Origin: Orbicella franksi
Lineage: Eukaryota
Direction of reading: 5' to 3'
DNA length: 64,000 nucleotides
Assembly: GCA_964199315.1 (NCBI GenBank)
Contig: OZ116705.1
Span: 11,408,001 to 11,472,000, forward strand
This document shows positions 4,919 through 63,875 of the stretch, piece by piece. The stretch's first letter is position 1, and each line of letters begins with the position of its first letter. The position numbers and the translations under genes were made by a program. The notes below the pieces were generated by a model. The model saw only the letters and a program-made list of their open reading frames with translations. It searched no databases and was not told the origin of the DNA.

Positions 4919-7900
4919 ATGAATGTTTTTGGTCTCGTTGTTTTTCTGTCATGGATTTCAATAATGCTTCGTCCGACGCACTCGCAGGGTGAGTTCAAAA
5001 CTGTCCTTACATTTTAATTTATACTCTCTAATTGCCGCTTTATACACCCTGAAATTGTGTATCCTAACACCCACCAATTTCCCGGGTTCTTATCACGAAC
5101 TCTGCCTCATAAGAGGGTTGAGTTTGTTGTTGGTTCTTTCTCTTCCTCTCGTTGGCCTTTTTCCGGGGTACTCCAATTTTCCCCTCTTTATGAAAGCCGA
5201 CATTTTTAAATTTCGAATTTGATCAGGAATCCAAGCGCAACGGGTTTGTCGGTCGCAAGTTTGTTACATGCTGCCCTCCGCCGAGCATTTCACGTTAATA
5301 TTTTCTCGAATAAAACTTACGCGATATTTCATTAATCACTCACAAAAACGGAGAAAAATAACTGAGTATTTTGTGTAACATTTTTATCTCCTGTCTGCCT
5401 CGTTTGCGAGAGTAATTTTGGTCCTTAATTTACGATGCGCGAAGAGTGCAAAAGATAAGACCCATGGGAAAATATAAATGTTCTTATTTGGTTCAATTTT
5501 TTCGATGATGAATTTGGAAAGCTAATCTTCTCTTTCGATCCAAAACTTGCAGTTCAGTCATTTTTGGTTCCTTGTCTTTCGTGGAAGCTTTCTTTATTTA
5601 GCAATCTTCGGTATTTCATTAAGGATAGTTCTTGCCTGTGAAAATACTAAGACAGGTTTTAAGATAAAAGATTTGAAGTTCTCGATGCGTTAATTTTTTA
5701 AAAAAATAACATTTTAATAACTTTACCGGAATTTATTTGTAATTTACCTTCCAATTGTGTTGAGCATCTAAGAGGCAATTTGCACTAGATGGGAAGAGGG
5801 ATCTGTAAATGGCGTGTCTAAGTCGTATTATATCGCCTAATAAAGGATGATGCTGCATTTTAGGTCAAAAAATAGTCAAGGTAGTTGACTTATTGCTTTG
5901 TGTTTTGTGTGGACTTTGTGAACAAAAATCTTGGAAGTGCAGGAAACGTGCGAGGAGTTCAAACGGCAAATAATCGAGATGCAGGCTTTCTTGTTATAGT
6001 CGTAACAATCGTCTACTACAAGTGATGTTCTTAATTATGAACATAAATATGAACTTTTGCTGATTAGTTGTGCCCAAGCTTTTCGGTTTAATCGTCTGCT
6101 ATGAAGGTAATTATCCTTTGCGTCCTGTAGATCATTATCATCAAAAGAAAAAAAAAAGAGAAAGAAACAACGTCTTCCTCGCATAAAATCATGAATATCA
6201 ATGACAAAGCACTCGACTATTATTAAAGGAAGGTTTTGCTAATGACAGGTGGATTTGAAATATTGCGTTTTCTCCACGGTATAAAGACCCCTTCTGTCCA
6301 AATTAATGGCCCTAAAACTCCTCAATCAGGTCACGTTATGGAGAAAACATCTTTGTTACTTGTGTTGCAGTCTTTATGCTATGCTGTGATGCGTTTGTCT
6401 CTTCAGCCAGCGAACTCGTTTGTTTTGTTTCTCCTTTTTCCCGTTGTTTTCGTCTCTTTTTTCATATATTTTTCTTTTTTTACTTTGTAGTATTCTTTAA
6501 TGTGTTCGGACTGTAAATAGCAACGGTGAACGAATTAACCAGCCCTTGTCCAGCAAAAAAACCTGCGTTACAGGTTATTTAAGCGCATATTTTTTGTCGT
6601 AAATTTTCGACGCCGTCTCTAAAAAAGAGTGCTTGGAGGTTGAAGCAGAACATAAACACCAAACTAGTACGCGATCGATAGTAAAATAATTCACTAATTC
6701 AATGAGTGTTTAACATAAAGACAACTTACAAACAACTAGGGAAAAGGCAAAAGTTGACCCTCCCTCATTTCCTCCACGATTTATTAGAATGAAAACTGTT
6801 TCTCCGCGTCATTTTACATCGCTATGGCAACCGCATTTTGACATAAGAGTCAAGCCAAATTTTATCGCTTTCACAGAATTTGAGATGCATTGCAGAATTA
6901 GTATTTTTAACATTTCATTATCATTGTAGATTAAATTCCATCAATTTCCAATATTGTCGAATTCTGACTTGCTGAGATCATCAAGGGGACAGGGAAGGGG
7001 GGAAGGGGGGAGGGGTGGGGTGTGTTTCCAAAACAGTGTGAGGAAAATTTGAAACGTCATCATAGCTACCCCCTCAACGTATCCGTTACGAACCCTGCAT
7101 GCCATATTACTCAGTTGGTGTCATAGCTTTGAGCAATTTCGTTTGTTCAGTCAAATACTGAAACGTTCATGTATGCGTCGACTGAGTTTTTCACTTTCTT
7201 CCCCGGTGGATTCAAGCCGGTAATCAAAAGAATGCATTGTTTGTGTTGTTGTAAAATTCAATAATTCCGTCACCAGCCTCTCCCTAGTTACAGAGCTGGG
7301 CTGAGGTTATCTAATCGACGCAGCAATTGCTTTCAGTTTGATATAGTTCTACATTACTTTACTGTTTATCTTTGATTCTCTCCTTGTTTGCTTATCTTTT
7401 TGTTCATAGGCAGATAATTCGAGAAACACTTTTCAAGTGAAGACTATTAACCTTTTCACTGTTTTTATTTTATTGGTTTTCCTTGATTACAAGATTGACA
7501 GTTTGACACTTATTGTTTACGGCGCCAAATGAAACCCTCCAAGACTTAGCCTAGCTATGAGAGGTCGAGGCTTCTTAGGTTTGGCCACTGTTTGCTTCCA
7601 TCTAACAGTTATTTTTTTTTTAATTACGGTGCAAGATTAACATTTTATACAAGCCTCGATCTTTTTCTCTCTATATAAATGTCATAGCTTCAGAACCTAG
7701 CCAGAGGCTTTCTTACTCTGTAAGTATGAGTCTGGTCTTCACGCTGCTTGTGATGTGTCAGATGTCTTGTGAACTGAACGCTCAGCAGTGCAGAAGCGAA
7801 TATTCCATCCGTGGCATGATGTTAAAAGCGCATATCTTCGTGGCCAAGAAAACTGCAAACTGGTTGAAGTGTGTAGACAAGTGTAACCATGACATCAGAT

Positions 7901-10900
7901 GTCAAAGCTTTAACTACGTCATCAGCCAAGGCATATGTGAATTGAACAACCGCACCAAAGAAGCCAGACCTGAAGATTTTGTTCCGGACAGCGATCGGTT
8001 CTATATTAAACGATTAAAAGGAAGAGGTATTGTTCTTCGTTGAGTGTCTCTATCATTTTGAAGAAGACGCATTCGTATCCTATACAAGTAGACAGAATCT
8101 CTTTGAATTTCGAGGGCTGCTAACAAAGCCCGCAGCTTTCGTCAACAGAGCTTAACGATGGTGATGTTTAGTTATGACAGAAAAGGCTAAAAGAACAATG
8201 TTTTTGACTTTTCTATTTTTAGTTCCTCTTGGATCCGTTCCCGAGTTCCCAGCTGAGTCGTGCGCCGAGATCAGAGCCAGTGATAGGGAAGATGCAGTCA
8301 GCGGTAATTACTGGTTCGATTCAATTAAACCTGGCGAGGTGGTCCTGGCTCGTTGTGACATGTCTAAACTAGGTAACTTTACCTTGATTGAGTTCTTCCG
8401 CCTCTTCTAATAAACCACTGCTATAAAATACGTCAAACTCCAGGCTGTTTCTATGATTAGAGGCCCTTATAGTACACAAAATAAGCCATAATATCTACGA
8501 TAAGTGTAGCCTTTTAAGCTTAACTAAATTCTTACGATCTTTTACCTGTAATCAGGAGCCATAATCGGGGACGGAGACCGCAAGCGCGCGCTATTTCTAG
8601 TATTGGGGTTGTCCCCATGATATGGGACAATAATTCTATTTTTAGAACAAATTGCGCCATCGCCTGTGGCACACGCGCGTACATGCTGCGAGGATTTTTG
8701 CGGATGTCGCGCGGGGGAAATGGCGTCCGAAATTCCGAAATTTTTCATGTTTTTGGCCCAGAACTCAACGCGTTTACGTCTGTTGGAATTTTTCTTTACT
8801 ATTTTCGTCGTAAGCTGCTCCAGTTTGAGTGAAGTAAGACAGTGTCGAATTTAGGTATGTTCCGCTTCAAGCTTATATATATCGCTGACCAAGTTGTGTT
8901 CCGACGGATGCTTCTTTTACATGAACTGTACATTACTCCACTTTAAATTTCACATATGTTGAAGATTAACAGCTTTTCCATGACACAGCAAAAAACTAGC
9001 TGGATATATTTAGATATAGCAGAGCTTTAGGACTTCATAGTTTCCTAGCTCCTCTTGCCACACGCTTGCGAGCAATTTGCCAGTCTATCGCGACTGAAAA
9101 GTAAAACAAAATAATTGCTAGTTTGGTCAGTTTGAGTTTCGCCTGAATTGTAAGCAACGCTTGCTGTTTCATCAAGGCCCAATAACTTTACGTCCGTAGA
9201 TACTGCTCAGTTTTATTCGTGTAAAAATCCACCAAATTCTCTGTTGTCGATGAATGAGAGCGCCCGCCGATGCTTGTTTTGTACAGTCAGTAAACATGAC
9301 AAATTGTACTTGCGCCGCACTTTCGTGTGAAAACGTACATCGAACTCAAACAATAATTCTATGGTTTTTTAATATGTTTAAGATTGATAAATGTTTGAGA
9401 ACATATTAAAAGCTAAGCTGAAAATATGTGAATAAAGCAGAAATAATCAGCAAAGTTACGTTGACGCTTTCTTTAATCAACTTCGAACAACGATTTCGAT
9501 TTTGTTGATCGAGTTATCAAAACTTCTTGTTTATTTTCATTTTCGCAGTGTAAAACTTCACTATGCTTATGTTGAAGAAACCCACATGATGTTAGTAGCA
9601 TTTTTTGCGTTCGTGAAATTTGTTGCAGCATCTCAGCACAAAAGATAACGAAAGAAATCTTTGTCAAGATTTGTTGACAATTAAAAACACCGACTCGGAC
9701 TTGAAAGTGCACGAGCTGCACTATGCAAATGAGCTAATTGTACGCGTCAGACTTTCCTTTCAAAAACTTTTGCAAGCTCACCAAACAAGCAGAAACAATA
9801 AGAAACCATCAAAACAGGTTTTGGTTATGATTAACCATTGTCTGAGAAACTCACAAATTAACTCGATACCAGAGTAGAGAGTTTTCTTGCTATATTCTTA
9901 AGCATACGCGTGAGCTTACAACTAGCGTGAGCAGATCTTATTATTCATTCCCAGCGCGAGATTGAAGTCTTGTTTTCGACCCTGAAAAACCCACCTTTTC
10001 CGTTGGCTCAGAGCATAAAACTACATATAGGCGCCCTGGTTCGTATTCCCTGCCTTATTCCCTGCCATCGCTGTGAAAAATACGCAAGATAATCCCTCAA
10101 GGCCTCTCAACTCTCACCATTTGATCACGCAACGTGACAACATCCACGCGAGAGCCCCCGACATGTGCGTGGATCCGCGCGGATATATGACGTCAGGATG
10201 GCGCAATTTGTTCTAAAAATAGAAAAATTGTCCCATATCATAGGTGCGCGCGGATCCCAAGACTTACGGTCTCCGTCCCCGATTATGGCTCCTGCTGTAA
10301 TTTATGATAAGTGCCCATTAATGCAATAACGTGGTGTGTGCGGTAAAAAACTCTTCCAATAAGCGTCCTCCTTAGGAAAGTAACATTCAAGTCATGGACA
10401 TAGACTGTTTAATTTACGAGATGCTCTTCAAAAGAAACGCCAAGCCTGGCCTTAATACGCAATCGGACTTCATCCACGCAAAACTATTTGTTTAGAGTTA
10501 TAAGTGGTATCAGAGAGACAAAAATCCCTCTATAACTGACAACATCAATAACAACAGGATTTATATAGGTCATGAAGCTGAGAGCTACAAAGATGGGTTT
10601 CAGGTCTGCTATCTTCTCTCAACTAATAATTAACGGTCAAAGAGGCTCTATCTTCCCCTTGCAACTGACGGCGGGCGGCCAGAACCAGAAGATTCCCACC
10701 AAGCAAGAAATTGTCTGTAAAAAAGATAATTTAAGGAGCAGATCCGTTGCCATTCCCTGACTGGATTATGATAATGATGGATATCTGATAAAGATGTTTT
10801 GTTTTTCTTTATAACAAGCGAAAAACTCTGAAAGTTATATGAGTTAGTTACTGATCTCTTTTGCCTATTTGTTCCGGACCGGGCTCCGTCAAATATAACA

Positions 10901-13900
10901 ACATAAGCTATTACATTTTAATCCTTTCAATCTCATCTTCTAAAACAGATATCGATGACTGTGCAAGTCATCCCTGTAAGAACAACGGGACCTGTACAGA
11001 CCGAGTGAACGGATTCAACTGCAGCTGTGCACCAGGCTTTAATGGAACAGAGTGTGAAATAGGTAACCGTAGCCAAATTAATGTATTTTCCTTCATATTT
11101 CAGGGTTTTTGGATCTTTTGTACATTGCTCCCTAATATTAAGATTTCATGCCAATAATGAGGCTGTAATGCTGAAAATCGATGGACATCATCCATTCAAA
11201 TGGTTTGTTTGGTAATTTTCATGCACTTGATTATGATAATGATGTACATCTGATAAAGACGTTTCCATGGTCTCCAATTTCTGCATAGAAGCATGAAACT
11301 TATAATATTTTGAAGTACTTTCAGTCGCAAGTGGTAGCGAACTCCTTTGCATGCTGTGTAAATCGTTTTGACAAAGAATGACTGTCGTTACTCCAAGTTA
11401 TCTTAGCTATCGAATATGACCGTTACTAACTTTCTTTCTCGTCCCCTAAACAGATATCAATGACTGTGCAAGTCATCCCTGTAAGAACAGCGGGACCTGC
11501 ACAGACCGAGTGAACGGATTCAACTGCAGCTGTGCACCAGGCTTTAATGGAACAGAGTGTGAAATAGGTAACCGTAGCCAAATTAATGTATTTTCCTTCA
11601 TATTTCAGGGTTTTTGGATCTTTTGTACATTGCTCCCTAATATTAAGATTTCATGCCAATAATGAGGCTGTAATGCTGAAAATCGATGGACATCATCCAT
11701 TCAAATGGTTTGTTTGGTAATTTTCATGCACTTGATTATGATAATGATGTACATCTGATAAAGACGTTTCCATGGTCTCCAATTTCTGCATAGAAGCATG
11801 AAACTTATAATATTTTGAAGTACTTTCAGTCGCAAGTGGTAGCGAACTCCTTTGCATGCTGTGTAAATCGTTTTGACAAAGAATGACTGTCGTTACTCCA
11901 AGTTATCTTAGCTATCGAATATGACCGTTACTAACTTTCTTTCTCGTCCCCTAAACAGATATCAATGACTGTGCAAGTCATCCCTGTAAGAACAGCGGGA
12001 CCTGCACAGACCGAGTGAACGGATTCAACTGCAGCTGTGCACCAGGCTTTAATGGAACAGAGTGTGAAATAGGTAACCGTAGCCAAATTAATGTATTTTC
12101 CTTCATATTTCAGGGTTTTTGGATCTTTTGTACATTGCTCCCTAATATTAAGATTTCATGCCAATAATGAGGCTGTAATGCTGAAAATCGATGGACATCA
12201 TCCATTCAAATGGTTTGTTTGGTAATTTTCATGCACTTGATTATGATAATGATGTACATCTGATAAAGACGTTTCCATGGTCTCCAATTTCTGCATAGAA
12301 GCATGAAACTTATAATATTTTGAAGTACTTTCAGTCGCAAGTGGTAGCGAACTCCTTTGCATGCTGTGTAAATCGTTTTGACAAAGACTGACTGTCGTTA
12401 CTCCAAGTTATCTTAGCTATCGAATATGACCGTTATTAACTTTCTTTCTCGTCCCCTAAACAGATATCAATGACTGTGCAAGTCATCCCTGTAAGAACAG
12501 CGGGACCTGCACAGACCGAGTTAATGGATTCAAATGCAGCTGTGCACCAGGATTTAATGGTCCACAATGTGAAACAGGTAACTTTGGTACAGATACGCAT
12601 CAGCTTTGCCGTTGTAGCACTGATCTACAGGCCCACCTTTGCACCTTGCTCCTCTGATGTATCGATCCATACTCTTTATTTTGATCCTTTGATAGATTCC
12701 GAGATATGACAATGTTGTTCTAAGAGTTAATTCCGTGTTCCGATAGATATTTTCCGTAATACAGAGATAGATCAATGTCCACGCTAGACTCCTTTCCGTT
12801 CTCTCCGATTCCCTTTCTGCACACGTTTTTCAAGTGTCAATCACGAGACTCGACTCAGACCTCGCAGGTCAAACCAGCTCCAGTCCCTAACGTATTTACA
12901 ACACACTCCCCCCTGATTGACTGAGTCAATCATAAGGTGAGACAAAATTTTGACTACAACTCGTAATGTCAGTTCAGTGTTCAAATCGGTTCAGACAGTT
13001 TATGCAACAGTAACTATTGGGATGTCTTCATTCCTGACCATCTGAATGTTCCATCCGCTGTTCGGCTTTACAGCTTCCGCATTAGCTATGACTTTATCAA
13101 GTTCATTGATTTCAAGAGGGTAGAGCTTCTGAATAGGACGTTTCAGAAGAGTTTTGTTGAGAGACTTGTCCACTGTCACCACTTCTGCTGTGCGCGCGAC
13201 GTTGTCTCGTCCCCACAATAGTTTCTCTACTTTCCCCAATCTCCACTGCTGTCTAGGTTTCTTGTCTGTATAGATGTGTACAATGTCTCCTTCTTGAATG
13301 ACTCTTCTTGGCGCTCCTCCTTTAAGTTTCTGGTACTCACGGATCCCAGTCAGATATTCTTCCTTCCATCGATTTCTGAAGTGGGCGAGGAGATTGTTCA
13401 AATATCTTTCTCGCCTGACCAGCGTGTTCATAGGTGCAGTGATAACAGGGGACTGGTCTAACAGTCGACGCCCAATCACAAGATGAGAAGGAGTGAGAGG
13501 ACCTTCTGATAACTCATCGTAGACGTAGGTTAAGGGCCTGGAATTTAAAACTCCTTCAGTTTCAATCAAGACTGTTTCCAGTTCTTCATAACTCAGCTTT
13601 GCGTTTCCAAGCACTTTCTTGAGACACCGCTTTACTAGTTTGACGCAGATTTCAAAGAAACCTCCCCACCAACTGGCTGTGGGAACATTGAATTTCCAGT
13701 CAATGTTCAGATTAAGAACAAATTTCTTCACTTTTCCATCCTTGAAGGTTTTCCCATTGCCTGAAATGAACAAGTTTGGCAATCCTCTTCTACCGAAGAA
13801 TCGCTTTAGCACTCTTATGAACGAGGATGCGGTAAGGTCTGGGACAAGTTCAACGTGAATAGCTCTTGTGCTGGCACACGTGAAAAGAGCAATGTAACAT

Positions 13901-16900
13901 TTGAACATCTCTCCTTTGGACTCGTAGATATTCTTCACATACAGGGGACCAGCAAAGTCCACTCCAACTTTGGAAAATGCTAGATCATCTGAAACTCGAA
14001 ATGAAGGCAGAGGTGGAGCGGGTCGAGTACTGTAGGCTCTTCCTAGGATCTTCTTGCATGTGACACACTTCGAGAGTACATCCTTGACCCCCTGACGACC
14101 TTTGATAATCCAGAATTGGGCTCGGATTTCAGTAAGAGTTTCTCTAACGCCATTGTGTTTCACGTTTCCATGAGCTTGCACTATCACCAACTTTGTGAAG
14201 TGCTGTTTCCTTGGTAACAGGATAGGAAATTTCGCTGAATACGGTAATGAGGAATTCTGGATCCTTCCCTTGCACCGTAGAACTCCTTGTTAATCCTTGA
14301 AGACTGCTAATTGTTCCCATGTAGAACTAGATTTCTCTCTTTCTTCAAGTTTAGTTTGGACTTCTTTGTACCAGAGATGCTTAGCTTCATTCATGTCCTC
14401 CATGCTGATATCATGTGTTTCTGTCTTCTTTCTGAGCCTTTGGAGGAATTTCAGCACAAGAGCGGTCACTCTAAGAAGTTTGCTGGTTGGACGACTTCTG
14501 AGATGCTCTGAGAACTTTGCACTGATACTGTCATAACTCTTGAGATTTCAGATGAACTTTCCTTCTTTAATTCCCTTAAAGCTTCTTCTGGGACTGCGGT
14601 TCCACCTGCTTGACAGTTGGGCCAGTCAAATTCTTCCTTCTTTAGAAATGGTGCTCCCTTCCACCAAAGTTCGTTGGATGCAATGACGGAACTCTTAGCT
14701 CCTCGTGAAGCTATGTCAGCTGGATTAAGCTCAGATGGGCAATATCTCCAATGTTCCTTCTTCCAAAGACTTCGGATCTTCTGAACACGATTTTGCACAA
14801 ACTGCTTAAACTGCTTAGACTCTCCATTGATCCACCACCACACAATTTGAGAGTCTGTCCAATTAAACACCCCATCTACCTTCACAGTGTGGACCAGAGC
14901 CTCGTACACAACTGTCATCAGATTTGCTAACGTTAAGGCATCGATCAACTCCAGTCGAGGAATTGTTTCTCCACTTAAGGGGGCAACTCGGGTCTTCGAG
15001 GCTAGCAGATGTGAAGAGCAGGCATTAGAGGTCATCACCTTAATGTAAACATTTGCTCCAAACACATATTTGCTGGCATCTGCAAATCCATGGAGTTGAA
15101 TAGATATAATGTCTCCCACTTCTATCTCAATACTACTGCAATAGTACTACTGCAATATTCGAGACTCTCTCCATGTCTTCAAATAATTCCTTCCAACATG
15201 ATGCGAGATCTTCTGACAGGGCTTCGTCCCAATCAATTTTTAACCGGCAAATCTCTTCAAACATGAACTTCAGTGGCAAGATAACTGGTGACAACAGGCC
15301 TAGTGGGTCGTAGAATTGAGCAGTAGTGCTCAACAGTTTCCGTTTTGTTAGAGTTCCTTCCAAGGCTTGTCCAGCAAAGGTAGTTAGATCAAACTTGAGG
15401 TTGTCTTCTATCCGATCCCACGGAACACCCATCACCTTGATCAGGGTTTCTTCATTCACAGCATTGTTTGAAGAGCCATCTTCAACCACATGAGACTTTG
15501 ATGCAAGAGTTACTTCAGGAAATGGTTTAGGCGTTGCTAATATTGCTGCTTCCTCTTTCTTGATCAGCTCAGTTAACTCTTGACTCTTTGATGCCCACTT
15601 CCTCATGTTAAAGCCTCCTTCTCCGAAGCGCAACTTCAATTTCCGGTAAAGTTCAAAGCCGTCCTTTACCGTGTCCTTCCCGGGTACAAAATCGTCAACA
15701 TACAAGGCTCTGACAACGGTGTCTACAAGACGTGGATCAGTGTTCTCATACTTTGATAAGTGATTCCTTAGTGTCACATTCAGAATGAATGGAGAGCATA
15801 CAAGGCCAAACACAAGCCGTGTGAATCTCAGTGTGATTACTCCCGGGTTTGTAGAGTTGATGTCATCTATCCACAAGAACCTCAACAAATTTCTCTCCTC
15901 AGGATTAATTTCAATGTTCAGGAAAGCCTTCTCCAAATCTCCAATCAGAGCTACTTTGTGAAAACGGACTCTCAACAAGATATCAAAAATCAATGGAGTT
16001 AAGGCAGGGCCTGGCAGGAGACAGTCATTCAAACTAGGTTCGGTTCGAGACTTCGCACTAGCATCATAGACTACGCGCAGTTTGGTAGTGGTTCTATCTT
16101 CTTTCACCACCTCTTTGTGAGGAATGTAATGAACAGTTCCAGGAAGGCATTGTTCCTCATGTCCCTTGTCAATCATTTCAACTATACCTGAGTTCAATTG
16201 TTCCCTGATTACAGTGTCATACTGCTGTAAAATGTCTGGCTTAGCTTTCAAACTCTTTAAGGAACATGCGAGACGGTTTTGTGCCAACAAGTGGTTATCT
16301 GGAATATCAGGGTGTTCTTCCTTAAATGGGAGAGACACTTCATAACGGACCCCATTGAACTTCACCTTGGTCAGATAATCTTCAAGAAATTCATCTTCTC
16401 TTTCTTTAACTCCAAGAGTGTCATAGTCCCAGAACTTGCTCAGTTCATTTTTGAGAGAATCATTCTTTGAGACAGAATCTTCCTCGACCACCCTACACTC
16501 CGTCTTCATTACATGCGACATGTTAACGCTTGAAGGACTTTGACCTGAATTTGCCACATTTACAGACCCACTCAACACATACCCCAATCTTGTACGAACT
16601 GCTACAGGGTCATGAAGCTCCCCCCGTACCACATGGTTTTGAACGACTGACCAGTAATAATCTGCTCCAATCAATATGTCCACTTCTAGCTCCTCATCCC
16701 CTTGTGAGTAATCAGCTAGAGGTAAACCTTGGAGATGTGGGTAACACTGCTGTGCAACTTCAATTGTTTGGTTTGCATTAGGGCCACAAATCAAATCAAC
16801 TTCATAGACATTAATGAACACTGTCAAATTGTCTTGGCATTCCAATGCGAACTGAACAACGTCACATTTCTTCAATGATGCCTCACTGTTTCCAAACGTT

Positions 16901-17510
16901 TTAATCAGAACTGTTTCAGTTGCAATCGGTGACAGGCCTAATTCGTTCCTTAATCGCGTGTTTATGTAAGACTTCTGAGAACAAGAATCAAGCATGATTC
17001 TCACATTACAGGAACTCTCTCCATTAGGATTTCTGACAATTGCTCTAGCCGTTTGCAACAAAACAGAGTTGTTCTTAACATCTTGAGTGAAATACAAATT
17101 AGTACTCACAGTTTGTTCCTGATTGTTGCCTCTCGCTTGTCCGGCTGGAGATGGGTGACCTGGATATTCTTGGGCGCTGCACAATGCTAAATGATGTTTT
17201 CCGCCACAACGGTGACATCGAGCCTGACAATCACGACTCAAATGACCACTCCTCAGACAACCAAAACATTCAAGTGGTAGCGAACTCCTTTGCATGCTGT
17301 GTAAATCGTTTTGACAAAGAATGACTGTCGTTACTTCAAGTTATCTTAGCTATCGAATATGACCGTTATTAACTTTCTTTCTCGTCCCCTAAACAGATAT
17401 CAATGACTGTGCAAGTCATCCCTGTAAGAACAGCGGGACCTGCACAGACCGAGTTAATGGATTCAAATGCAGCTGTGCACCAGGATTTAATGGTCCACAA
17501 TGTGAAACAG
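4919..17510 (+). CDS. Cluster copy A: secreted PAN-like / FReD-N-like / 5x cbEGF protein, 3' end missing or disrupted
   Basis: GT-AG, all phase-1 exons: 4919-4988 ([24 protein letters not shown]), 7688-8026 (PAN-like ...[27 protein letters not shown]), 8223-8372 ([11 protein letters not shown]...GNYWFDS...RCDM), EGF 10949-11062, 11454-11567, 11959-12072, 12464-12577, 17397-17510. Open frame throughout; no EGF_CA/D8C exons found after EGF5. Confidence 0.8.
7688..8026 (+). CDS. Copy A exon 2: second hydrophobic segment + PAN/apple-like domain
   Basis: ORF 7726-8043; Cys pattern C-x3-C-x5-CQSFNY-x6-CELN typical of cnidarian PAN-like domains; donor AG|GTATTG at 8026; paralogs at 46731-47051 and 60883-61203. 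Confidence 0.8.
8553..10294. mobile_element. Non-autonomous DNA transposon, P-superfamily-like (1742 bp) in copy A intron 3
   Basis: TIR CAGGAGCCATAATCGGGGACGGAGACCG extending imperfectly ~100 bp; 7-bp direct repeat CTGTAAT at 8546-8552 and 10295-10301; no transposase ORF; absent from the equivalent intron of copies C and D. Confidence 0.75.
10949..12577 (+). repeat. 505-bp near-perfect tandem repeat, each unit one EGF exon plus intron
   Basis: Exon starts 10949, 11454, 11959, 12464 (period exactly 505); units differ by only a few substitutions. Confidence 0.95.
12655..12903 (-). repeat. BEL LTR copy 1 (3' LTR, 249 bp)
   Basis: Minus strand TGTTGT...ACATCA with internal AATAAA; preceded by PPT; flanked by TCCTC (12650-12654). 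Confidence 0.88.
13000..17270 (-). pseudogene. BEL/Pao gag-pol polyprotein, disrupted
   Basis: ORFs 15133-17295, 14466-15119 and 13000-14190 in order PR-RT-RH-IN; frameshifts near 15140 and 14480, in-frame stop near 14290; gag N-terminus replaced by host intron at 17271. Confidence 0.9.
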
Positions 17511-17587
17511 GTAACTTTGGTACAGATACGCATCAGCTTTGCCGTTGTAGCACTGATCTACAGGCCCACCTTTGCACCTTGCTCCTC

Positions 17588-32020: not shown

Positions 32021-32053
<33 letters not shown>

Positions 32054-49900: not shown

Positions 49901-52368
49901 TAATACATTTATTGTGTAAACGGAGAATATGTTTCAAAAACATCTCTAAAACACTGGTGTGACTGGAGCAACTGGAAAGGACCAGAACGTTATGTGATTT
50001 ACACATTAGATGGGCTCGTATCGGCGGGGGATGGCGGGGGGGGGGGGGGGCGGCTTATATCGGGAATAATATCTTTGTTAGCAAATAGAAGGGTTTATAT
50101 AGGGGGAGGCTTTAACGTGGTATTTTATGGTATGACCGTTTTTAAATTTCTACCTTATCCCTTTAAAACAGATATCGATGACTGCGTAAGTCATCCCTGC
50201 AAGAACAGCGGGAACTGCACAGACCGAGTGAACGGATTCAACTGCAGCTGTGCACCAGGATTTAATGGCACACGATGTGAAACAGGTAGTAGTTCGTGTA
50301 AATAATAAAACAGCAATGTTAACAAACGATTAGGAGCCAATAAAAAGGTGTGTTTCCTAGAAATTGACAGCCACTGGAAAAGGGAAAACAAAAAGAAAGT
50401 TGTCTTTGACTATTATTGCCACGAGGAAACCAAAAGATAAACCTTTTTCACGAGTTGCTGTGAAACTTCCATCGCTTTTACTTTTCCAACAGAAATGTTT
50501 TAATTCCTTCTTTGCAGTATATTTCCTTGTAAAAGTTTGCCTGTGAGCGGACACACGACCCAACGTTAAACATGCCAAACACAGTAGGGCGTGTAGTTCC
50601 ATGGTCATAACCTCCAATCTGGTGAAGGGGGGACAGATGGGGAATTGACCGCATGGGTATGGCTTCGATTCAGGGCCGATTTTACACCTTCTGTGGGCAG
50701 GTGGAGGCGAAATGATGCGAAGAGTTAGTTACTTAGACGAGTCAACGAATTCAACTGCAGCTGTGCACTAGACTTTACTGGAACACTGTGATTGAGATAA
50801 TCACTGTAGATAACAGCGGGTAATACCACATGCAAGTAATAGGGCTGAAACGCCTACAATCGATCGGCAGATGGCAGTATTGTGTGGTTGATATCACTGA
50901 AAGTTTCCGTTAGCCAGCCACACGATTACTGTAATAAAATGTGTCTTTCTATATGCCGTGTAATCACTTTAGAAATGTAAAAACTTTGGAGTGGATTTAA
51001 GGCGCCAATTCTACTTATTTTCCTTCGTAACAAGGTTCACTTGAGATTTTTCTCATATTTTTTTCGCCTTTTTCACGTGTAAAGTAGTTTAGTTCCACCA
51101 GAATTCCCTTTTATGATCGTAATGGGACACTTAACCATCCATTGTGACATTGAAATACTAACACTTACATCCCTTTGTTTTTAGACATTGACGAGTGCGC
51201 TGCACAGGTCGACCCATGTGGTGCTGTAGCCAACTCTGAGTGCAAGAACACGGATGGATCGTACTATTGCCAGTGCAAAGATGGATTTGTAAAGAACGGT
51301 GCTATTTGTGAAGGTGCAACACAGTTTTATCATTAGTAGGGATATCTTCTATTCTGTTTTAATTAGCTACAGTTAAAAACTTTATTTGTCGTTATGTAAG
51401 GACGGTTTGCCACATTTAAGAACCTTATTTAACAAGTAGGCATGTATCAGGAAAAAAATAATAAATAACCCACATGAAGTTAGAATCCACTACATAGTTG
51501 GTTAAAGTATCCCACATGGTATTCCTCCAGCGGTTTATCCAATGGCAGAGAGTAAAAATACCTAAGTGGAGAAACACTGGCGCTGATTGCGATGTTCTCG
51601 CACTTAGAGCCGATAAATATCATCGCATGAAGGACAAATTTATTCACCAATGGCTTGCCTACAGGTTACCCAACGACATTTGAACTGGAAATTTCAAATG
51701 TAAATATGAAGATTTTCTCGTATAAACAGACAAAAAGATGGTAATTAATACCTATTGTAGAAGCTATATTTCGGTGGCGAGATCTTTTTACAACCTTGTT
51801 CCCAGGAAAAATGGAAACAAAGACAAATCATATAGAAATGTTTGTGCATGACCGGATGTAATAAAGTGATGTAAAATTGAACAAAATATATGAAGTGACT
51901 GTATTCAAACTACAAGTAACATGCACGCAACAACCCAGCACGACAGAGATATTTACGGATCAGGGGAGAGTTATTTACGTATTACTTTGTTTGTTTGTTT
52001 TAGTTGACATATGTAAGAACTACCAAAATCTGACAGATGCTAAAAGAAAATATGACTACGCCACACAAGACGAGGCCAAATGTGACACTACACTCAATGG
52101 CTGGTATCGCTTCCAAGGAGCTGCAGGCACAAAAATGGTGACCACATGTCCACTGGAGTTCCGTTGTGATACAGCCTATCCTATCTGGTTGAGTGGTGGT
52201 CATCCTACAGTGACTGAGGGTAAAGTCTCAAGAATCGTCTGCATTCATAGGTCTGAGGACTGTTGTTACGTATCATTCCCCATTCAATTAAAGAACTGCA
52301 GTTCCTATTATATCTACAAGTTATATTCCTTTAGTTATTGTCCTGCCCGATATTGCAGTACTGACTAA
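40992..52368 (+). CDS. Cluster copy C: complete secreted PAN-like / FReD-N-like / 4x cbEGF / EGF_CA / D8C (uromodulin-GP2-like) protein, 496 aa
   Basis: Exons 40992-41061, 46731-47051, 47260-47409, 48211-48324, 49057-49170, 49357-49470, 50172-50285, 51185-51313, 52004-52368; all GT-AG, phase 1, total 1491 nt = 496 aa + stop; AATAAA near 52715. Confidence 0.88.
41611..41907 (-). mobile_element. Full-length tRNA-derived SINE with CORE/MIR-like central segment
   Basis: Minus strand GGGAGGCGCGGTGGCCTCATGG (A box) ... GGTTTGAGCCC (B box) ... GGGCAAGACACTTTACTCTCAC; 12-bp TSD ATAATGATGATA (41599-41610, 41908-41919); absent in paralogous introns. Confidence 0.85.
49719..50130. mobile_element. TA-flanked MITE in an EGF intron; paralogous copy at 62677-63116
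   Basis: CCGTAAAAT...ATTTTA(T/C)GG termini with TA flanks, GGGG-CTTATA subterminal motifs; same flanking intron sequence in copies C and D. Confidence 0.65.
50735..50795 (+). pseudogene. Decayed EGF exon remnant
   Basis: GACGAGTCAACGAATTCAACTGCAGCTGTGCACTAGACTTTACTGGAACAC matches the 3' half of the EGF exon with indels; no acceptor or donor. Confidence 0.7.
51185..51313 (+). CDS. Copy C EGF_CA exon
   Basis: [43 protein letters not shown]; TTTTAG acceptor, AAG|GT donor; not in the ORF track. Confidence 0.85.
52004..52368 (+). CDS. Copy C terminal exon: UMOD/GP2/OIT3-like D8C domain
   Basis: DICKNY...[40 protein letters not shown]...VCIH...CC...[14 protein letters not shown]...CPARYCSTD* aligns motif-for-motif with the uromodulin D8C region (CD..L.GWYRF, C.T..P.WL.G.HP, CC, YYVY.L, YC). 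Confidence 0.9.
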
Positions 52369-58148: not shown

Positions 58149-61100
58149 ATGAATGTTTCTGCGTTCCTCATTTTTGTGTCATCGATTTCAATAATGCTTC
58201 GTCCAACGCAAGCTCATGGTGAGTTCGAAAATGTCCTTACATTTTCATTGATAGCCTTTCAGTCGCGTTTTACACTATCCTACTTTGTGTATCCTAACAT
58301 CCACTTGTCTGTGCTGGCATCCCAAACTCTGCCTTATAAGCGGGTTGAGTTTGTTGTGGGTTCTTCTCTTCAACCTCTTCTTCTCGGTCATATTTTCTCC
58401 CGGGTACTCCTATTTTGCTATCTTTATGAATACCGACATTTTAAAACTCCAATTTGACCAAGAATGCGAGTTTGTCTGAGTTTGTCTGAACACCGTCAAT
58501 ATTTTCATTCAGCTGGAACTCGCCAAGATCACGCAAAATTGTCATGATAAAATTTTCTCAGGTAAAACTGACATGATATTTCATTAATCACTCAGAAAAA
58601 CGGAGAAAAATGCGTTTTTTTGGTAACATTTTTATCTCCTGTCTGTCTCTTTTGGGAAAGCAGTTTCGTTCCTTAATTGACGATTCGCGAAAAGTTTAAA
58701 AGATAAGACCCATGCAAAAATATAAATGAACTTATTTGGTTCAATAGTTTTCTCGATAATGATGATAACGAAGGTGATAATCAAGAGACTATCATCCAGA
58801 TCACAGTCTTTTGTGGTCGTTTGGGAAACTAATCTTCTAAAAGTTGCAGTTCAGTCATTTTTGTCTTTTTTGTCCTTCGTGGAAGCTTTGTTTATTTAGC
58901 ACTCTTTGGTATTTTAAAGCCGATAGTTGTAATGTCAAAATACTGTATGATAAAGAAAACTATTTTCAAGGAGATTTCAAGTTCTTGATGTATCATCGCT
59001 AAGTTTTCCACAAGTGACATTTGAATAAATTTACCGGAATTTATTAGTAATTTGTCTCACAATTTTATTGCGCATCTACGAGGCAATTTGCACGAAGCGT
59101 CGTCTAGTGTAAATCTCCCTGAATTGGACATGTCTCGCACGTTTTCGTGACAGCAATGCAAGGCATGTTAATAGCCAAGTGCAACAGCGCCTTTTGACAC
59201 GATTGCCGACGCATAATCCTTTACAAGAGTTGGTACGAGAAATTGCTACTTGCATTTATCTTATAGCATCACTACATTCTTAAAAATAATTCTCAGTCAG
59301 TCAGCACATAAATAAAGACGAAGAGGAAGCTAGAATATCAAAACCAGCTATTTTCTTACTAGATGGGAAATAAGAGGTCTGTAAAATGCATGTCTAGTTT
59401 GTATTATATCGCCTAAAAAAGAATGTTGCTGCATTTTTCGTTAATAAAATCGGCAAGGTGATCTTTGAGGAGAGATCTTTCAAAAATCTTCGAAGGGCAC
59501 GGAAATTTGGAGTTCAAACGGCAAATATGCGAAATGCGGGCTTTCTTGTTACAGTCTAACAAACATATCCTACTATACGTAATGCTGTTCTTAAAAAATA
59601 AATTATCTGAATTTAATCATAAACAAAAATAGGAACTTTATGCCCATGGGTTGTGTCACAGTTTTCTTCGGTCAGTCTTCTGTAATTAAGATAATTATCC
59701 TTTGAATTCTGTAGCCTAAAACTAAAAACGACTTCTTTCGTGCTCCAAAGCACTCGAGAATCAATAAAGGAAGTTATTACCAGTAACAGGTGGATTTAAA
59801 ATACCCCATTTTCCTCACAGTATGAAATTACCGTATGTCATCATTGAAACCCCTCAATTAGTCAAATTATGCGGAAAACATCTTTCTTGTTTAAGTATGT
59901 TGCGGTTTGAAGGCCAGTATGCGGTTTTCTCTTGAGCGAGCGAACTCGAGCGTTTCATTTGTTTTCTTTCGTTTTGTGTATTTGTTGAACTTTTTTGTCT
60001 TCTTTTGGTCTAAGCGAGCGTTATCTTGGATTCAGTAAGTTGAAGAAAGCAAACAAAAAGTTAGGTTGATGCGTAAATAAATTTAACAAGCTCTTTTCCA
60101 GAAAAAACGCCAGCGTTACAGGTTATTACATAATACAACAGACCACATATAAAAACGTAGTAAATGTTTTTCTTGCACGCTACAAGGAAAAAATTTTGAA
60201 AATGCTACAATCACCGGTTATTTTGGCTTTTGTTTGAGGAAAACTCTGGCAGGTAAATCGCTTAATTATCGCGATGTCATCGTTTTCGAAAAGCTCTGTT
60301 TTCAAAATGTTTCCCGTCCACGCACACTAAAACGCAAGCCGCCGTTTTCAAATTCCTCCTGTTTGAAGAGCGTTTTCATAACGGGTTAGAGGAGACGGTA
60401 GGTCTACGCATAGAAAGATAGCCGTGTTTTCAAATTCCTCCTGTTGGAAGAGCGTTTTCATGACGAGTTAGAGGAGACGGTAGGCCTAACCATAGAAAGA
60501 AAGCCGTGTTTTCAAATTCCTTCTGTTCGAAGAGCGTTTTCGTGACGGATTAGAGGAGACGGCAGGCCTAACCGTAGAAAGATAGCCGTGTTTTCAAATT
60601 TCTCCACTGTAGTGTGGACGCAGCCTGAGTTTTTCACCTCTCTTTTTCACTTAATGAAGTAAATTTCAATGATTCCCTCACCAGCCGTTCCCTAAATTTA
60701 TTTCAAGATTGGTTACAAACAACACTGTGTAATAACAGGTGGCTGTTGTGTCGCTGCCATTCATAGGATTTTGGCAAATTGACACTCAGCTATAAGAGAG
60801 CGAGATGCTCGCTTGCATCTAACAGTTAATTAATTAAGAAACATATTATGGAAGACTCCATATTTTTCTCTCCGTACGACAGTTTCAGAAGCTGGCATAA
60901 GTATGGCCATCACGGTGCTTCTGATGTCTCAGATGTTTTATAAACTGGACGCTCAGCAGTGTATAATTCAAGGCAAATATTCCATCCGTGGCATGATGTT
61001 GAAAGGACATACCTTCATCGAGGAGAGGACCGGAATTGGGCTTAATTGTTTAGACAAGTGTGATGATGACGTCAGATGTCAAAGCTTTAACTACGTCATC

Positions 61101-63875
61101 AGCCAAGGCATATGTGAGTTGAACAACCGCACCAAAGAAGCCAGACCTGAAGATTTTGTTCCGGACTGCGATCGGTTCTATATTAAACGATTCAGGGAAA
61201 GAGGTATTGTTCTTCTTTGAATGTTCATCTCCATCTTTTTTTTAAGGATAGTACTCGTATCTTATACGAGCGTGCCCAGAATCTCATTGCATCCCGAGGA
61301 CAATAAACAAAGCCCGCAGTTTTTCGTGAAGAGTGCTTAAAAAAAAGTGGTGTTTAGTAATGACAAGAAAGCGCTAAAAAAACAATATTTTTGACTTTTC
61401 TATTTTTAGTTCCCCTCGGATCCATTCCCGAGTTGCCAGCTGAGTCGTGCGCCGAGATCAGGGCGAGTGAAGGAGAAGATGCAGTCAGCGGTAATTACTG
61501 GTTCGATTCAACTAAACCTGGCGAGGCAGTCCTGGCTCGTTGTGACATGTCTAAACTAGGTAACTATACGTTCGGGGTTTTACCTTGATTTATTATTTAC
61601 AAACTTCTTGCAATAAGCCTCATCTACGCGCTATAAAATGCCTAAACTTCCAGGCTGTTTCTGTGAGTCTGTGATTAGAGACTCTGTATTTTACAAAACA
61701 AGGCATATTTGCGAAAAGTGCAACTTTGGCGCTAAATCAAATTTTTACGAACTTTTATATTTAGGTTATGTTACCTTTCTATTAATGTAATAACCAGGAG
61801 TGTGTTTTAATAAACCCTTCCAATAAGCGTCTCCATATCGAAAAGAACGTTCAAGACATGGACATAGGCTGTTTAATTTATGAGATACTCTTCATAAAGA
61901 AGAGCCCAGCTTTAAAACCCAATCAGGGTCCATCCGACCAAAACTATTTGTTCGGATTAAAACAGGTTTCAGATCTGCTATCTTCTCTAGACTAATAATT
62001 AACAGGCAAACAGGCTCCATCTTCCCCGTGCAACTGACAGCGGGTGGTCAGAACCAGAAGATTCTCACCCAGCAAGAAGTTGTTTGTGGAACAGATATAT
62101 TTCAAGGAGCAGATCCGTTGCCATTCCCAGACTGGATTATGATAGTGATGGATATCTGATAAAGATATTGTGTTTTTCTTTATAAAAAGCAAAAAACTCT
62201 CTGAAAGTTAGTTAGTTAATGATCTCTTTTGCCTATTTGCTCCGAGTCGGGTTCCGTCAAGTGTAACAACATAAGCAATTGCATTTTAATCCTTTCAATC
62301 TTATCTTCTAAAACAGATATCGATGACTGTGCAAGTCATCCCTGTAAGAACAACGGGACCTGTACAGACCGAGTTAACGGATTCAACTGCAGCTGTGCAC
62401 CAGGATTTAATGGCACAAAATGTGAAACAGGTAACTATATCCAAAATTCATTTTCCTTCGATTTTTATACTGGTTGAAGAGAGGAGAAACATATATTTTT
62501 GCTTATGCATATTTGGTTAAAGAAAAGCACACTTTTTTCCCACAACTTTCTTTTGTCTCCATAATTCTGTCCAATTGACCTATCCAAGTCTCTAAGGAGC
62601 GAAATTTGGGGCGTTAAACGATCTTATGCATTTTTGGTTATTTTGCAGATATTGTTGTTGTGGGTTCTATCGTATACGGTACAATCCCAAGTTAAAGCCC
62701 TGGGATCATATAACGTCATAAGGGGTTTTGTGTGGGCTTAAAGACGGGGGGTGGGGTGCTTATATCCGGGGGCGGGAATATAAGTGGAATAAAAATAATG
62801 TTTCGGAACGACGATATAAAACGTAACTGAGCAACTAATTAAAGCTAACATACCAATACATTTAGAACTATTAGATTTTTAATACATTTATTGTGCGTAA
62901 CAATAAACGGAGAATATGTTTTAAAAACATCTATAAAACACTAGTGTGACTGGAACAACTGGAAAGGAACAGAACGTTATCTGATTTATACATTAGATGG
63001 GCTCGTATCCGGTTTTGGGGGAGAGGGGGGGGGGGAGCGCTAATATCTGGAATAATATCTCTGTTAGCAAATAGAAGGGTTTATATCCGGGGAGGCTTTA
63101 ACATGGTATTTTACGGTATGACCGTTATTAACTTTCTACCTTATCCCTTTAAAACAGATATCGATGACTGTACAAGTCAACTCTGTAAGAACAACGGGAA
63201 GTGCACAGACCGAGTGAACGGATTCAACTGCAGCTGTGCACCAGGATTTAATGGCACACAATGTGAAACAGGTAACTATAGCTAAAACTAGTTAATTTTC
63301 TTTCAAATTCTACGGGTTTTAATCTCTTTCTAAGTTGTTTGCAGTGTTGTATCTTTTAACTTCAAGTATAGTTTTGTTATTGAGTTTTGTTGTTGGTTGT
63401 TGCAGGTTCTACCGAATGTGACCGTTATTAACTTTCTGCCTTATCACCTTGAAACAGATATCGATGATTGCGCAAGTCATCCCTGTAAGAACAACGGGAC
63501 CTGTACAGACCGAGTCAACGGATTCAACTGCAGCTGTGCACCAGGATTTAATGGCACACAATGTGAAACAGGTAACTATGACCAAAATTAGTTAATTTTC
63601 ATTCAAATTCTACGGGTTTTAATCTCTCTCTAAGTTCTTTGCGCGCAGTGTTGTATTTTTTAACTTCAAGCATAGTTTTGTTATTGAGTTTTGTTGTTAG
63701 TTGTTGCAGGTTCTATCGAATGTGACCGTTATTAACTTTCTGCCTTATCACCTTGAAACAGATATCGATGATTGCGCAAGTCATCCCTGTAAGAACAACG
63801 GGACCTGTACAGACCGAGTGAACGGATTCAACTGCAGCTGCGCACCAGGATTTAATGGAATGAAATGTGAAACAG
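58149..63875 (+). CDS. Cluster copy D: secreted PAN-like / FReD-N-like / >=4x cbEGF protein, continues beyond window
   Basis: Exons 58149-58218, 60883-61203, 61410-61559, 62317-62430, 63158-63271, 63458-63571, 63762-63875; open frame, phase 1; last intron matches the intron preceding EGF_CA in copy C. Confidence 0.87.
60345..60600 (+). repeat. 82-bp tandem repeat (3 units) inside a MITE-like element in intron 1 of copy D
   Basis: TTTTCAAATTCC... starts at 60345, 60427, 60509, 60591; 2 units at ~38305-38490 and 1 near 43430 in paralogs. Confidence 0.8.

Follow-up and report, generated by a model that had tools for sequence, protein, structure and literature searches.

A coral gene array joining a conserved PAN/apple base to diverse D10C heads of the uromodulin type

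What do the repeated genes in this part of the Orbicella franksi genome encode, and what keeps their products different from one another? The window analysed here, a stretch of 64,000 nucleotides (contig OZ116705.1, positions 11,408,001 to 11,472,000), was described in an earlier note, made from the letters alone, as holding three multi-exon paralogs and one 5' fragment that share signal, PAN, short and EGF exons. A regex scan and tblastn located all of these elements on the + strand (Table 1): four signal exons, three pairs of a PAN and a short exon (at 7.7/8.2, 46.7/47.3 and 60.9/61.4 kb), 13 near-identical 114-bp EGF exons, one calcium-binding EGF (cbEGF) exon and one D8C exon. All exons of the window copies have AG/GT borders and phase 1-1.

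Table 1. Positions of family exons and associated features in the window
Feature	Position	Strand	Remarks
Copy A exon 1, signal peptide (23 residues)	4919..4988	+	tblastn; ATG at 4919; GT donor
Copy A PAN/apple exon	7688..8026	+	second PAN subtype, ~70% identity with copy C
Copy A COLFI/FReD-N-like exon	8223..8372	+	150 bp
Copy A four 114-bp EGF exons	10949..12577	+	10949-11062, 11454-11567, 11959-12072, 12464-12577
BEL/Pao retrotransposon inside copy A	12904..17270	-	Peptidase_A17, RVT_1, rve
Copy A duplicated fifth EGF exon	17397..17510	+	tblastn
Copy B first (signal) exon, alone	36052..36121	+	tblastn
Copy C exon 1, signal peptide	40992..41061	+	
Copy C PAN/apple exon	46731..47051	+	Pfam; acceptor at 46731 in 10 RNA reads with a signal-exon end
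Copy C COLFI/FReD-N-like exon	47260..47409	+	50 aa, 2 Cys; Pfam, RNA reads
Copy C four 114-bp Notch-type calcium-binding EGF exons	48211..50285	+	48211-48324, 49057-49170, 49357-49470, 50172-50285
Degenerate EGF exon remnant in copy C intron	50741..50782	+	tblastn
Copy C cbEGF (EGF_CA) exon	51185..51313	+	Pfam
Copy C D8C/D10C exon	52004..52368	+	Pfam; includes stop codon; hypervariable part 52246-52365
Copy D exon 1, signal peptide	58149..58218	+	tblastn
Copy D PAN and COLFI/FReD-N-like exons	60883..61559	+	60883-61203 (6-Cys subtype), 61410-61559
Copy D four EGF exons	62317..63875	+	62317-62430, 63158-63271, 63458-63571, 63762-63875 (final base of fourth exon)

Copy C is an intact gene of nine exons (40992-52368) whose splicing gives exactly 496 aa, in the order signal, PAN/apple, 50-aa COLFI/FReD-N-like module, four EGF modules, cbEGF, D8C (as a full 10-cysteine D10C) and stop. 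It ends in EGF_CA and D8C with no transmembrane segment, as had been proposed, and the stop directly follows D8C. Copy D extends past the window: its cbEGF exon lies about 0.8 kb, and its D10C exon about 1.6 kb, outside it (L031). The first four EGF exons of copy A form 505-bp exon-plus-intron tandem units with 97-98% mutual identity, and the BEL/Pao element within this copy lies between two direct repeats of 566 bp (12338-12903 and 17271-17836, 99.3% identical) that each contain one EGF exon. No cbEGF or D8C exon of copy A was detected anywhere in the window by regex scan and tblastn, and because none lies downstream of its fifth EGF exon this copy is 3'-truncated. The single exon of copy B belongs to a stretch of 5 kb in which the 5' region is partly duplicated, with 35.5-38.5 kb resembling 40.6-43.4 kb.

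Spliced transcripts exist, so the first of the refuting conditions named in the earlier note does not hold. PolyA RNA reads connect a signal exon to the PAN exon at 46731 and form GT..AG joints at the predicted copy C borders 47051|47260, 47409|48211, 48324|49057, 49170|49357 and 49470|50172. The reads were few, no joint leading to copy C's cbEGF exon or D10C exon was seen among them, and the family consists of near-identical paralogs; the splice junctions are therefore confirmed at the level of the family.

We used Pfam, phmmer and structural comparison to examine the identity of each module. PAN_1 (28.5 bits, cut-off 21.4), EGF (35.0 bits, cut-off 21.5), EGF_CA for the last EGF module (39.5, cut-off 27) and D8C_UMOD (68.0 bits, cut-off 27, E 8e-19) were all recognised by Pfam. 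The D10C exon matches UMOD and GP2 across its whole length (phmmer, E about 6e-24, 35-41% identity), and its AF2 model (pLDDT 94.7) fits GP2 (7P6R) and UMOD (7PFP) with TM 0.92-0.93 and an rmsd of 1.3 Å. The last exon encodes a complete 10-cysteine D10C domain, with the predicted fold of the GP2/UMOD decoy module.

The PAN fold was tested on a 72%-identical Oculina homologue (P0158), which matched the plasminogen PAN module (Z 12.2), the HGF N domain (Z 11.7) and the apple lectin TgMIC4 (Z 11). Across known PAN/apple modules (plasminogen/HGF N domain, FXI apple, Toxoplasma MIC4, Sarcocystis SML-2) the fold is shared with Z 10.7-12.2, as is the core cysteine pattern, but sequence identity to the coral PAN is only 12-20%. 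Copy C carries a subtype with five cysteines, one of them unpaired, and copy D a subtype with six.

The short exon gave a Pfam match to COLFI only, at 14.5 bits and thus under the 26.2 cut-off. Its predicted product resembles residues 28-78 of the procollagen I C-propeptide (Z 5.7, 33% identity) more closely than residues 204-247 of fibrinogen beta (Z 3.3), and the nearest language-model clusters carry Fibrinogen_C or COLFI. A complete COLFI/FReD globular domain of about 230 aa was rejected, since a single 50-aa exon is present; the module is the N-terminal sub-domain only of the COLFI/FReD type. The exon that had been called FReD-N-like is thus present, but lies nearer to the N-terminal part of the fibrillar-collagen C-propeptide.

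Each EGF exon starts with DIDDC or DIDEC and contains cbEGF consensus motifs, and by sequence reading these exons also carry consensus motifs for O-glucose (C-x-S-x-P-C) and O-fucose (C-x4-T-C). Of the 15 sequons in copy C, 11 fall within its four EGF modules, and the proteins are probably heavily glycosylated. An NLT sequon at the start of the D10C domain is kept in 25 of 25 heads. The position aligned with UMOD N275, the high-mannose N-glycan site that binds FimH and acts as an adhesin decoy, is K105 in copy C, and an NLT sequon occurs there in one of 25 copies.

Neither a ZP module nor a transmembrane segment, GPI signal or hydrophobic tail was found in copy C, in which an in-frame stop follows ...RYCSTD; the other intact copies have the same stop. 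A uromodulin or GP2 proper, that is, a former of ZP-module filaments, was rejected for want of a C-terminal ZP module or anchor. The signal exon, the end of the reading frame immediately after D8C and the lack of a hydrophobic tail make the products look secreted, in agreement with the earlier proposal of two-headed secreted proteins (PAN plus D8C). The products of the array thus consist of a conserved PAN/apple and COLFI-N-like base, a stalk of one to five EGF modules and one cbEGF, and a C-terminal D10C head.

Three paralogs greatly understate the family: the window is a small slice of an array comprising at least 43 genes (C8, 9.65-11.48 Mb), and the wider region from 7.6 to 11.9 Mb contains about 70 D10C exons. 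Stop codons interrupt four of 43 D10C exons, leaving about 39 open; they also occur in some PAN and short-module exons. Transposons occupy intergenic gaps. The number of 114-bp EGF exons ranges from one to five among 21 genes, and fresh tandem duplications of 505-bp and 304-bp exon-plus-intron units are present. Near-identical units are thus duplicated and lost, which bears out the earlier suggestion that spacer length is tuned by EGF exon number.

All of the 25 D10C heads compared are distinct. Their scaffold is nearly invariant (10 cysteines in 23 copies, 12 in one and nine in one) and carries four hypervariable loop patches with 22-24 variants each. Pooled dN/dS was 0.74 for D10C, 0.36 for PAN, 0.42 for the short module, 0.19 for EGF and 0.39 for cbEGF, so that the description of the family as fast-evolving applies to the D8C end but not to the other domains. 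Within D10C, contiguous loop segments have dN/dS of 1.4-2.9, in contrast to 0.03-0.12 for those scaffold segments with measurable synonymous change. Per-site tests for excess non-synonymous change in D10C found no individual site significant, tree-based tests being unreliable under recombination. Synonymous divergence is raised as well in two of the four patches, so that part of the signal is due to mosaic segments of old origin that gene conversion has shuffled. Divergence is 0.04 in the intron upstream of the D10C exon, 0.13 in the exon and 0.10 in the 3' flank, and nucleotide diversity peaks at 0.17-0.24 in the final 120 coding bases, compared with 0.03-0.10 on either side. The end of the exon is therefore two to five times as diverse as the flanking non-coding DNA.

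Pairwise distances in the PAN region correlate with those in neighbouring introns (0.66-0.71) but are uncorrelated with those in the D10C exon (rho -0.09), and the 5' half and the 3' head of these genes have independent histories. Inside the D10C exon the PHI statistic was 0.604, against 0.713 +/- 0.018 under permutation, with none of 2000 permutations as low, indicating short-tract exchange within the exon.

The coral protein shares the complete 10-cysteine D10C with the decoy module (beta-hairpin plus D10C; 7P6R, 7PFP, 7Q3N) of both UMOD and GP2, and like UMOD it bears D10C at the tip of an arm of EGF and cbEGF. Unlike either, it lacks the ZP polymerisation module, the GPI or transmembrane anchor and the consensus cleavage site region, ending three residues past the last cysteine, and it has a PAN/apple and COLFI-N-like base that both of them lack. 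The N275-type glycan site of UMOD is missing in 24 of 25 coral copies, and the coral genes are massively multicopy with hypervariable loops.

In the explanation we favour, unequal crossing-over and gene conversion in the repetitive EGF stalk would re-pair constant bases with different heads and at the same time reset stalk length, and selection would maintain the differences among the D10C loop patches. The constant PAN end might attach to a host partner or glycan that is itself conserved, and the D10C end, being variable, might recognise a range of ligands from outside, of which microbial surfaces in the mucus or epithelium are the most likely. The outcome would be a set of soluble molecules, akin to adaptors or opsonins and encoded as a germline library, whose loop patches are kept different by selection, a reading to which we give an even chance. 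One constant end, a stalk of varying length and four diversified loops are what a germline recognition repertoire would be expected to show; that PAN-EGF-D10C proteins may function as one is something we infer from sequence. Biomphalaria FREPs and sea-urchin Sp185/333 are diversified secreted recognition families of invertebrates. The array resembles them as a tandem secreted multigene family with conserved and hypervariable parts diversified by recombination or gene conversion, but its domains are unrelated to theirs, making the likeness an analogy of mode and not membership. More tentatively, and in our view rather doubtfully, the array might be a combinatorial germline library of soluble receptors in stony corals (about 70 different D10C heads, a constant PAN anchor, and stalks and base-head pairings that unequal crossing-over in the EGF repeat reshuffles) that determines which microbes or algal symbionts bind at the surface. 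Immunity or partner choice in cnidarians would then have a branch, hitherto unrecognised, that makes use of the decoy fold of uromodulin.

The true decoy-module fold of the head raises the alternative that the N-glycans of D10C and the EGF stalk are bound by microbial lectin adhesins, as in uromodulin/GP2, so that microbes are trapped in mucus, and that the loops vary only as a by-product or to escape microbial proteases. The invariant NLT sequon, the many sequons of copy C, most of them in EGF modules, and the start of patch 4 at the position aligned with UMOD N275 fit such a glycan decoy. However, the N275-equivalent sequon is confined to a single head, a glycan decoy has no need for 25 different protein surfaces, and without a ZP module there would be no polymeric filaments, the source of UMOD multivalency; we therefore consider it unlikely. 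A structural or regulatory role in the extracellular or skeletal organic matrix, with calcium-binding EGF stalks and cysteine-rich ends serving adhesion or calcification and the array supplying dosage, would account for the cbEGF consensus in every EGF exon. Differential expression of coral genes automatically named 'uromodulin' has been reported for branch tips versus bases and for aboral tissue (PMC4320547, PMC13581030), and Pocillopora shows tandem amplification of EGF_CA families (PMC10236652). The genes published as 'uromodulin', however, are said to encode ZP-domain proteins and so may be different genes, and dosage predicts homogenised copies where distinct heads with loop-focused change are seen, which makes this role quite unlikely.

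Largely neutral birth-and-death turnover, in which constraint on D10C is relaxed and a recombination-prone, transposon-rich repeat region yields the array as a by-product, would accommodate the truncated copy A, the lone first exon of copy B, the stop codons in PAN, short-module and D10C exons, the transposons between genes and an overall D10C dN/dS below 1. It is nevertheless improbable given the strong purifying selection on the scaffold with its retained cysteines, the predominance of open D10C exons, the concentration of change in loops and an exon more diverse than its neutral flanks. Least probable, we think, is self/non-self or gamete recognition, in which the variable heads would label individuals or species when colonies fuse or reject one another or when sperm and egg bind. 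The array would suit such a role in being large and polymorphic-looking, in encoding extracellular proteins, and in its hypervariable loops and segmental exchange, and in favour of this reading we know of no coral allorecognition locus, but these proteins lack a membrane anchor and the variation was measured among paralogs, not alleles.

The molecules by which corals discriminate among microbes and symbionts are poorly known, and the array offers a concrete, testable candidate family. It presents the D10C fold with which vertebrate uromodulin and GP2 handle bacteria, here separated from the ZP filament, attached to a conserved PAN anchor and varied in four loops. It is also a clear natural case of how unequal crossing-over, given exons of symmetrical phase and introns that are nearly identical, can adjust spacer length and combine protein ends anew. 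Should the heads differ in their ligands, colonies could vary in copy number and head repertoire, which could affect their resistance to disease; otherwise the array is another uncharacterised 'uromodulin-like' expansion.

The architecture itself, unfamiliar to the earlier note, is already in databases; what is new is the extent of the array, the range of stalks, the mosaic history and the loop-patch diversity. NCBI lists the same domain order (signal, PAN, COLFI-N-like, EGF/cbEGF, D8C, stop) as 'uromodulin-like' or 'GP2-like' in Acropora millepora, A. digitifera, A. palmata, Montipora, Pocillopora and Oculina patagonica (KAL9961269.1), and as 'uncharacterized protein' in Nematostella vectensis (LOC5510992), with no function assigned; the literature searched yielded no functional study of these proteins. 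Many members in A. millepora and O. patagonica appear to lie on a single chromosome in each species, since they map to contigs of identical length (19.7 Mb and 32.2 Mb, respectively). With only 40-77% identity per domain to the window proteins, these homologues are not orthologues of individual copies. Most of those found have cbEGF only and measure 250-330 aa, whereas the array described here adds one to five extra 114-bp EGF exons. Acropora, Montipora, Pocillopora, Porites, Oculina and Nematostella all have a conserved PAN-COLFI-N cassette, and in A. digitifera the 50-aa short module is exactly what distinguishes isoform X3 from X4.

A pattern scan and tblastn searches with the exons of copy C as queries identified four gene units of the PAN-EGF-D10C family in the window (copies A to D), all on the plus strand and with AG/GT borders and phase 1-1 in every exon. 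Spliced copy C encodes 496 aa and stops three residues beyond the last D8C cysteine; its product lacks a ZP module, a transmembrane segment and a hydrophobic tail. The cbEGF and D8C exons of copy D lie 0.8 and 1.6 kb past the window end. Neither exon was found by tblastn for copy A in the window, where a BEL/Pao retrotransposon and then transposon debris occur instead, and copy A is therefore 3'-truncated. The tandem cluster of multi-exon paralogs plus a 5' fragment described in the earlier note, including a complete copy ending in EGF_CA and D8C without a transmembrane segment, was thus recovered by pattern scan, tblastn and Pfam, and the structural reading of that note was largely right.

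Features located in the window
Feature	Position	Strand	Evidence
Copy A, signal exon	4919	+	tblastn
Copy A, PAN exon	7688-8026	+	tblastn
Copy A, 150-bp short exon	8223-8372	+	tblastn
Copy A, four EGF exons	10949-12577	+	pattern scan, tblastn
BEL/Pao retrotransposon, inside copy A	13.0-17.3 kb	-	Peptidase_A17, RVT_1, rve
Copy A, duplicated EGF exon	17397-17510	+	tblastn
LINE-type reverse transcriptase fragments	17984-19646	-	
62-bp tandem repeat	19185-19309		
236-aa open frame	23939-24646	+	
Open frame with chromodomain	28969-29223	+	Pfam Chromo, E 2.5e-13
Copy B, signal exon only	36052	+	tblastn
82-bp tandem repeat, unit B (1.9 copies)	38338-38495		
Copy C, complete gene	40992-52368	+	tblastn, splicing
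Copy D, signal exon to end of fourth EGF exon, continuing beyond the window	58149-63875	+	
82-bp tandem repeat, unit D (3.2 copies)	60344-60605		

The BEL/Pao element is bracketed by 566-bp direct repeats (12338-17836 overall) that are 99.3% identical and contain one EGF exon each. These repeats consist of host EGF exon and intron sequence and are not LTRs. They far exceed a normal target-site duplication, which suggests that the insertion was linked to a segmental duplication or recombination event. The LINE fragments lie directly 3' of the last EGF exon of copy A, with the 62-bp repeat among them. The 236-aa open frame in the transposon-rich gap 3' of truncated copy A has a cysteine-rich C-terminal part and no Pfam match at E ≤ 0.001, and the chromodomain frame is probably a chromovirus-type integrase tail or a chromobox gene fragment. 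The 82-bp repeat (~90% identity) occupies the equivalent first-intron position in units B and D and belongs to the duplicated 5' region.

To examine splicing we used raw polyA RNA-seq reads, most of them from run X24 and a few from X22; the runs carry coral or coral metagenome labels. GT..AG joints were present at the predicted copy C borders 47051|47260 (11 reads), 47409|48211 (6 plus 3 reads), 48324|49057, 49170|49357 (11 reads) and 49470|50172 (5 reads), and the end of a signal exon was joined to the PAN exon at 46731 in ten reads; no joint into the cbEGF or D8C exon of copy C was reported among the reads. Spliced transcripts therefore exist, so their absence, which the earlier note would have taken as a refutation, does not apply; the RNA evidence counts only for the family and not for individual copies. 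Within the window, a loose RNA end at 46730 matches copy B exactly, as if its first exon served gene C, but the array holds nine occurrences of this 36-mer signal-exon end, so the reads are not assignable. 'Goes-back' joints between EGF exons were also present; circular RNA was considered for them, but cross-mapped paralog transcripts with another EGF order are the simplest source. Exon-skipping joints (PAN to EGF2, 9 reads; short exon to EGF2 or EGF4) come either from alternative splicing, all exons being symmetrical, or from cross-mapping of paralogs. An Acropora digitifera homologue has two NCBI isoforms, X3 and X4, whose sole difference is the 50-aa short module, so cassette skipping of this module is plausible.

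PAN_1, EGF, EGF_CA and D8C_UMOD exceeded Pfam cut-offs, and the short exon gave a sub-threshold COLFI match only. The D8C exon aligns over its full length to uromodulin (UMOD) 173-288 and glycoprotein 2 (GP2) 33-150 (E ~6e-24), and its AlphaFold model (pLDDT 94.7) fits both the GP2 decoy module and UMOD with TM 0.92-0.93 at 1.3 Å; the exon thus encodes a complete D10C with ten cysteines. The PAN domain and short module were modelled on an Oculina homologue (72% identical) rather than on the window copy itself. In this model the PAN fold matches the PAN domains of plasminogen and HGF and apicomplexan apple lectins (Z 10.8-12.2), and the short module is closer to procollagen-I C-propeptide residues 28-78 (Z 5.7, 33% identity) than to fibrinogen beta (Z 3.3). 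Language-model neighbours of the short module carry Fibrinogen_C or COLFI, but its affinity was settled by the fold search alone; phmmer (49 aa, PDB sequences) gave chance matches only, to ribosomal protein L16. On the modelled fold, the short module corresponds to the N-terminal sub-domain that COLFI and FReD share, not to a complete domain of either.

The EGF exons open with the calcium-binding motif DIDDC, bear consensus sites for O-glucose and O-fucose, and encode two or three N-glycan sequons apiece; copy C totals 15 sequons. The PAN domain has five cysteines in copy C (46731-47051) and six in the copy D subtype (60883-61203; …PDCDRFY…). The first PAN cysteine of copy C has no partner, which could permit disulphide-linked dimers. 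A second signal-peptide-like stretch (46733-46807) opens the PAN exon 3' of the true signal exon, and translation of Oculina homologues begins at this stretch. With a dN/dS of 1.57, the stretch resembles a relic start that became redundant once the first exon was added.

The same domain order is found in public protein sets of Acropora (five species), Montipora, Pocillopora, Porites and Oculina, under the names 'uromodulin-like', 'GP2-like' or 'hypothetical protein'; the Nematostella protein is annotated as uncharacterised. The PAN and short-module cassette is strongly conserved across these homologues. The architecture is thus old within Hexacorallia and catalogued only under automatic names. 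The earlier note had not recognised it as a characterised family; we found no study of the PAN-EGF-D10C architecture in the literature searched, but databases do list it. Coral and Acropora 'uromodulin' papers use automatic names for mostly ZP-containing genes. Expression hints under this name (wound ectoderm in Nematostella; coral aboral versus oral tissue and tips versus bases) concern ZP-type genes or leave domain content unstated, and a general remark on EGF_CA families describes them as tandemly amplified in corals (PMC10236652). In both A. millepora and O. patagonica, many members lie on contigs that are identical in size within the species, pointing to one chromosome per species.

Whole-genome searches (497 Mb) with the D8C, PAN and short exons as queries gave 327, 355 and 221 candidates, with >150 scored matches for each query. 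Among the matches listed, at least 43 D8C and at least 43 PAN exons lie at 9.65-11.48 Mb of contig C8, which holds the window (11408001-11472000), all on the plus strand and in most cases with PAN and D8C 3.2-5.6 kb apart. At least ~24 more D8C exons are at 7.6-8.5 Mb and at least four are on the minus strand at 11.81-11.91 Mb.

We compared 19 extra genes, from PAN to D8C, with the window copies. Among 21 genes (copies C and D and the 19 fetched, truncated copy A excluded), the number of EGF exons was one in three genes, two in three, three in four, four in ten and five in one, and fresh exon-plus-intron tandem units are present in copy A (505 bp) and copy D (304 bp). PAN distances track the adjoining introns (rho 0.66-0.71) and D10C distances follow the 3' flank (rho 0.60), but PAN-region and D10C distances are uncorrelated (rho -0.09). 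Within the D10C exon, PHI was 0.604 versus 0.713 ± 0.018, and all 2000 permutations gave higher values. The genes thus have a mosaic make-up. Recombination among the stalk repeats would re-pair bases (PAN plus short module) with D10C heads and alter stalk length, and short-tract exchange shuffles segments inside the head. Scaffold and neighbouring intron are homogenised, with loop patches remaining different.

Pooled pairwise dN/dS was lowest for EGF (0.19), intermediate for PAN (0.36), cbEGF (0.39) and the short module (0.42), and highest for D10C (0.74). Divergence between genes was 0.04 in the intron upstream of D10C, 0.13 in the D10C exon and 0.10 in the 3' flank, and nucleotide diversity in a 25-locus alignment reached peaks of 0.235 and 0.166 within the final 120 bases of coding sequence, compared with 0.03-0.10 to either side. 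In contiguous segments delimited on the structural model, dN/dS was 1.39 (residues 13-30), 2.88 (49-57) and 1.69 (105-114) in loops and 0.03-0.12 in scaffold segments; in the hairpin 82-92 both dN (0.46) and dS (0.61) were very high, and synonymous divergence was also raised in some patches. A dN/dS of 2.0 for entropy-picked columns was not relied on, because such a selection of columns is circular. Per-site binomial tests on parsimony counts gave nominal p < 0.05 at only one of the sites listed (0.027 before any correction for multiple testing), and no single D10C site is significant for excess non-synonymous change. Recombination inside the exon makes tree-based selection tests invalid. The signal is best described as diversity held and reshuffled in loops, with local dN > dS, and not as proven positive selection. 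Aromatic residues (FWY) are not enriched in the variable D10C columns of the array (0.11 versus 0.15 in conserved columns).

We give an even chance to the reading that these genes form a recognition repertoire of secreted bivalent adaptors with variable D10C heads. The constant, deeply conserved PAN/COLFI-N base would bind a host partner or glycan, the calcium-stiffened, glycosylated EGF stalk would give adjustable length, and the variable head would bind diverse external ligands. All 25 heads are distinct, with 22-24 variants in each of the four hypervariable patches; recognition of a different kind, in allorecognition or between gametes, has only a very faint probability. The array family shares the D10C decoy-module fold with UMOD/GP2 proper but lacks both ZP module and anchor, and only 1 of 25 copies has the site corresponding to the UMOD decoy glycan (N275). 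By these sequence features the family falls outside the UMOD/GP2 group proper, and a UMOD-like glycan decoy is unlikely.

A role as a matrix or skeletal component appears quite unlikely, and neutral birth-and-death turnover has a slim chance. As to turnover, 4 of the 43 D8C exons of the array contain a stop codon; ten cysteines are present in 23 of 25 heads (the other two have 12 and 9), and all 25 retain an NLT sequon. The novelty lies in array scale, base-head reassortment and loop hypervariability; the architecture itself is not new.

Dozens of further PAN and short-module exon pairs (45-62% identity) are clustered on contigs C15 (9.1-9.9 and 16.0-16.4 Mb), C3, C13 and C7, with no D8C match there among the best 150 listed. 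Public homologues pair the cassette or D8C with F5/8-C, SRCR, C-type lectin or Ig domains, and the PAN, short and D8C modules appear to have been shuffled widely.
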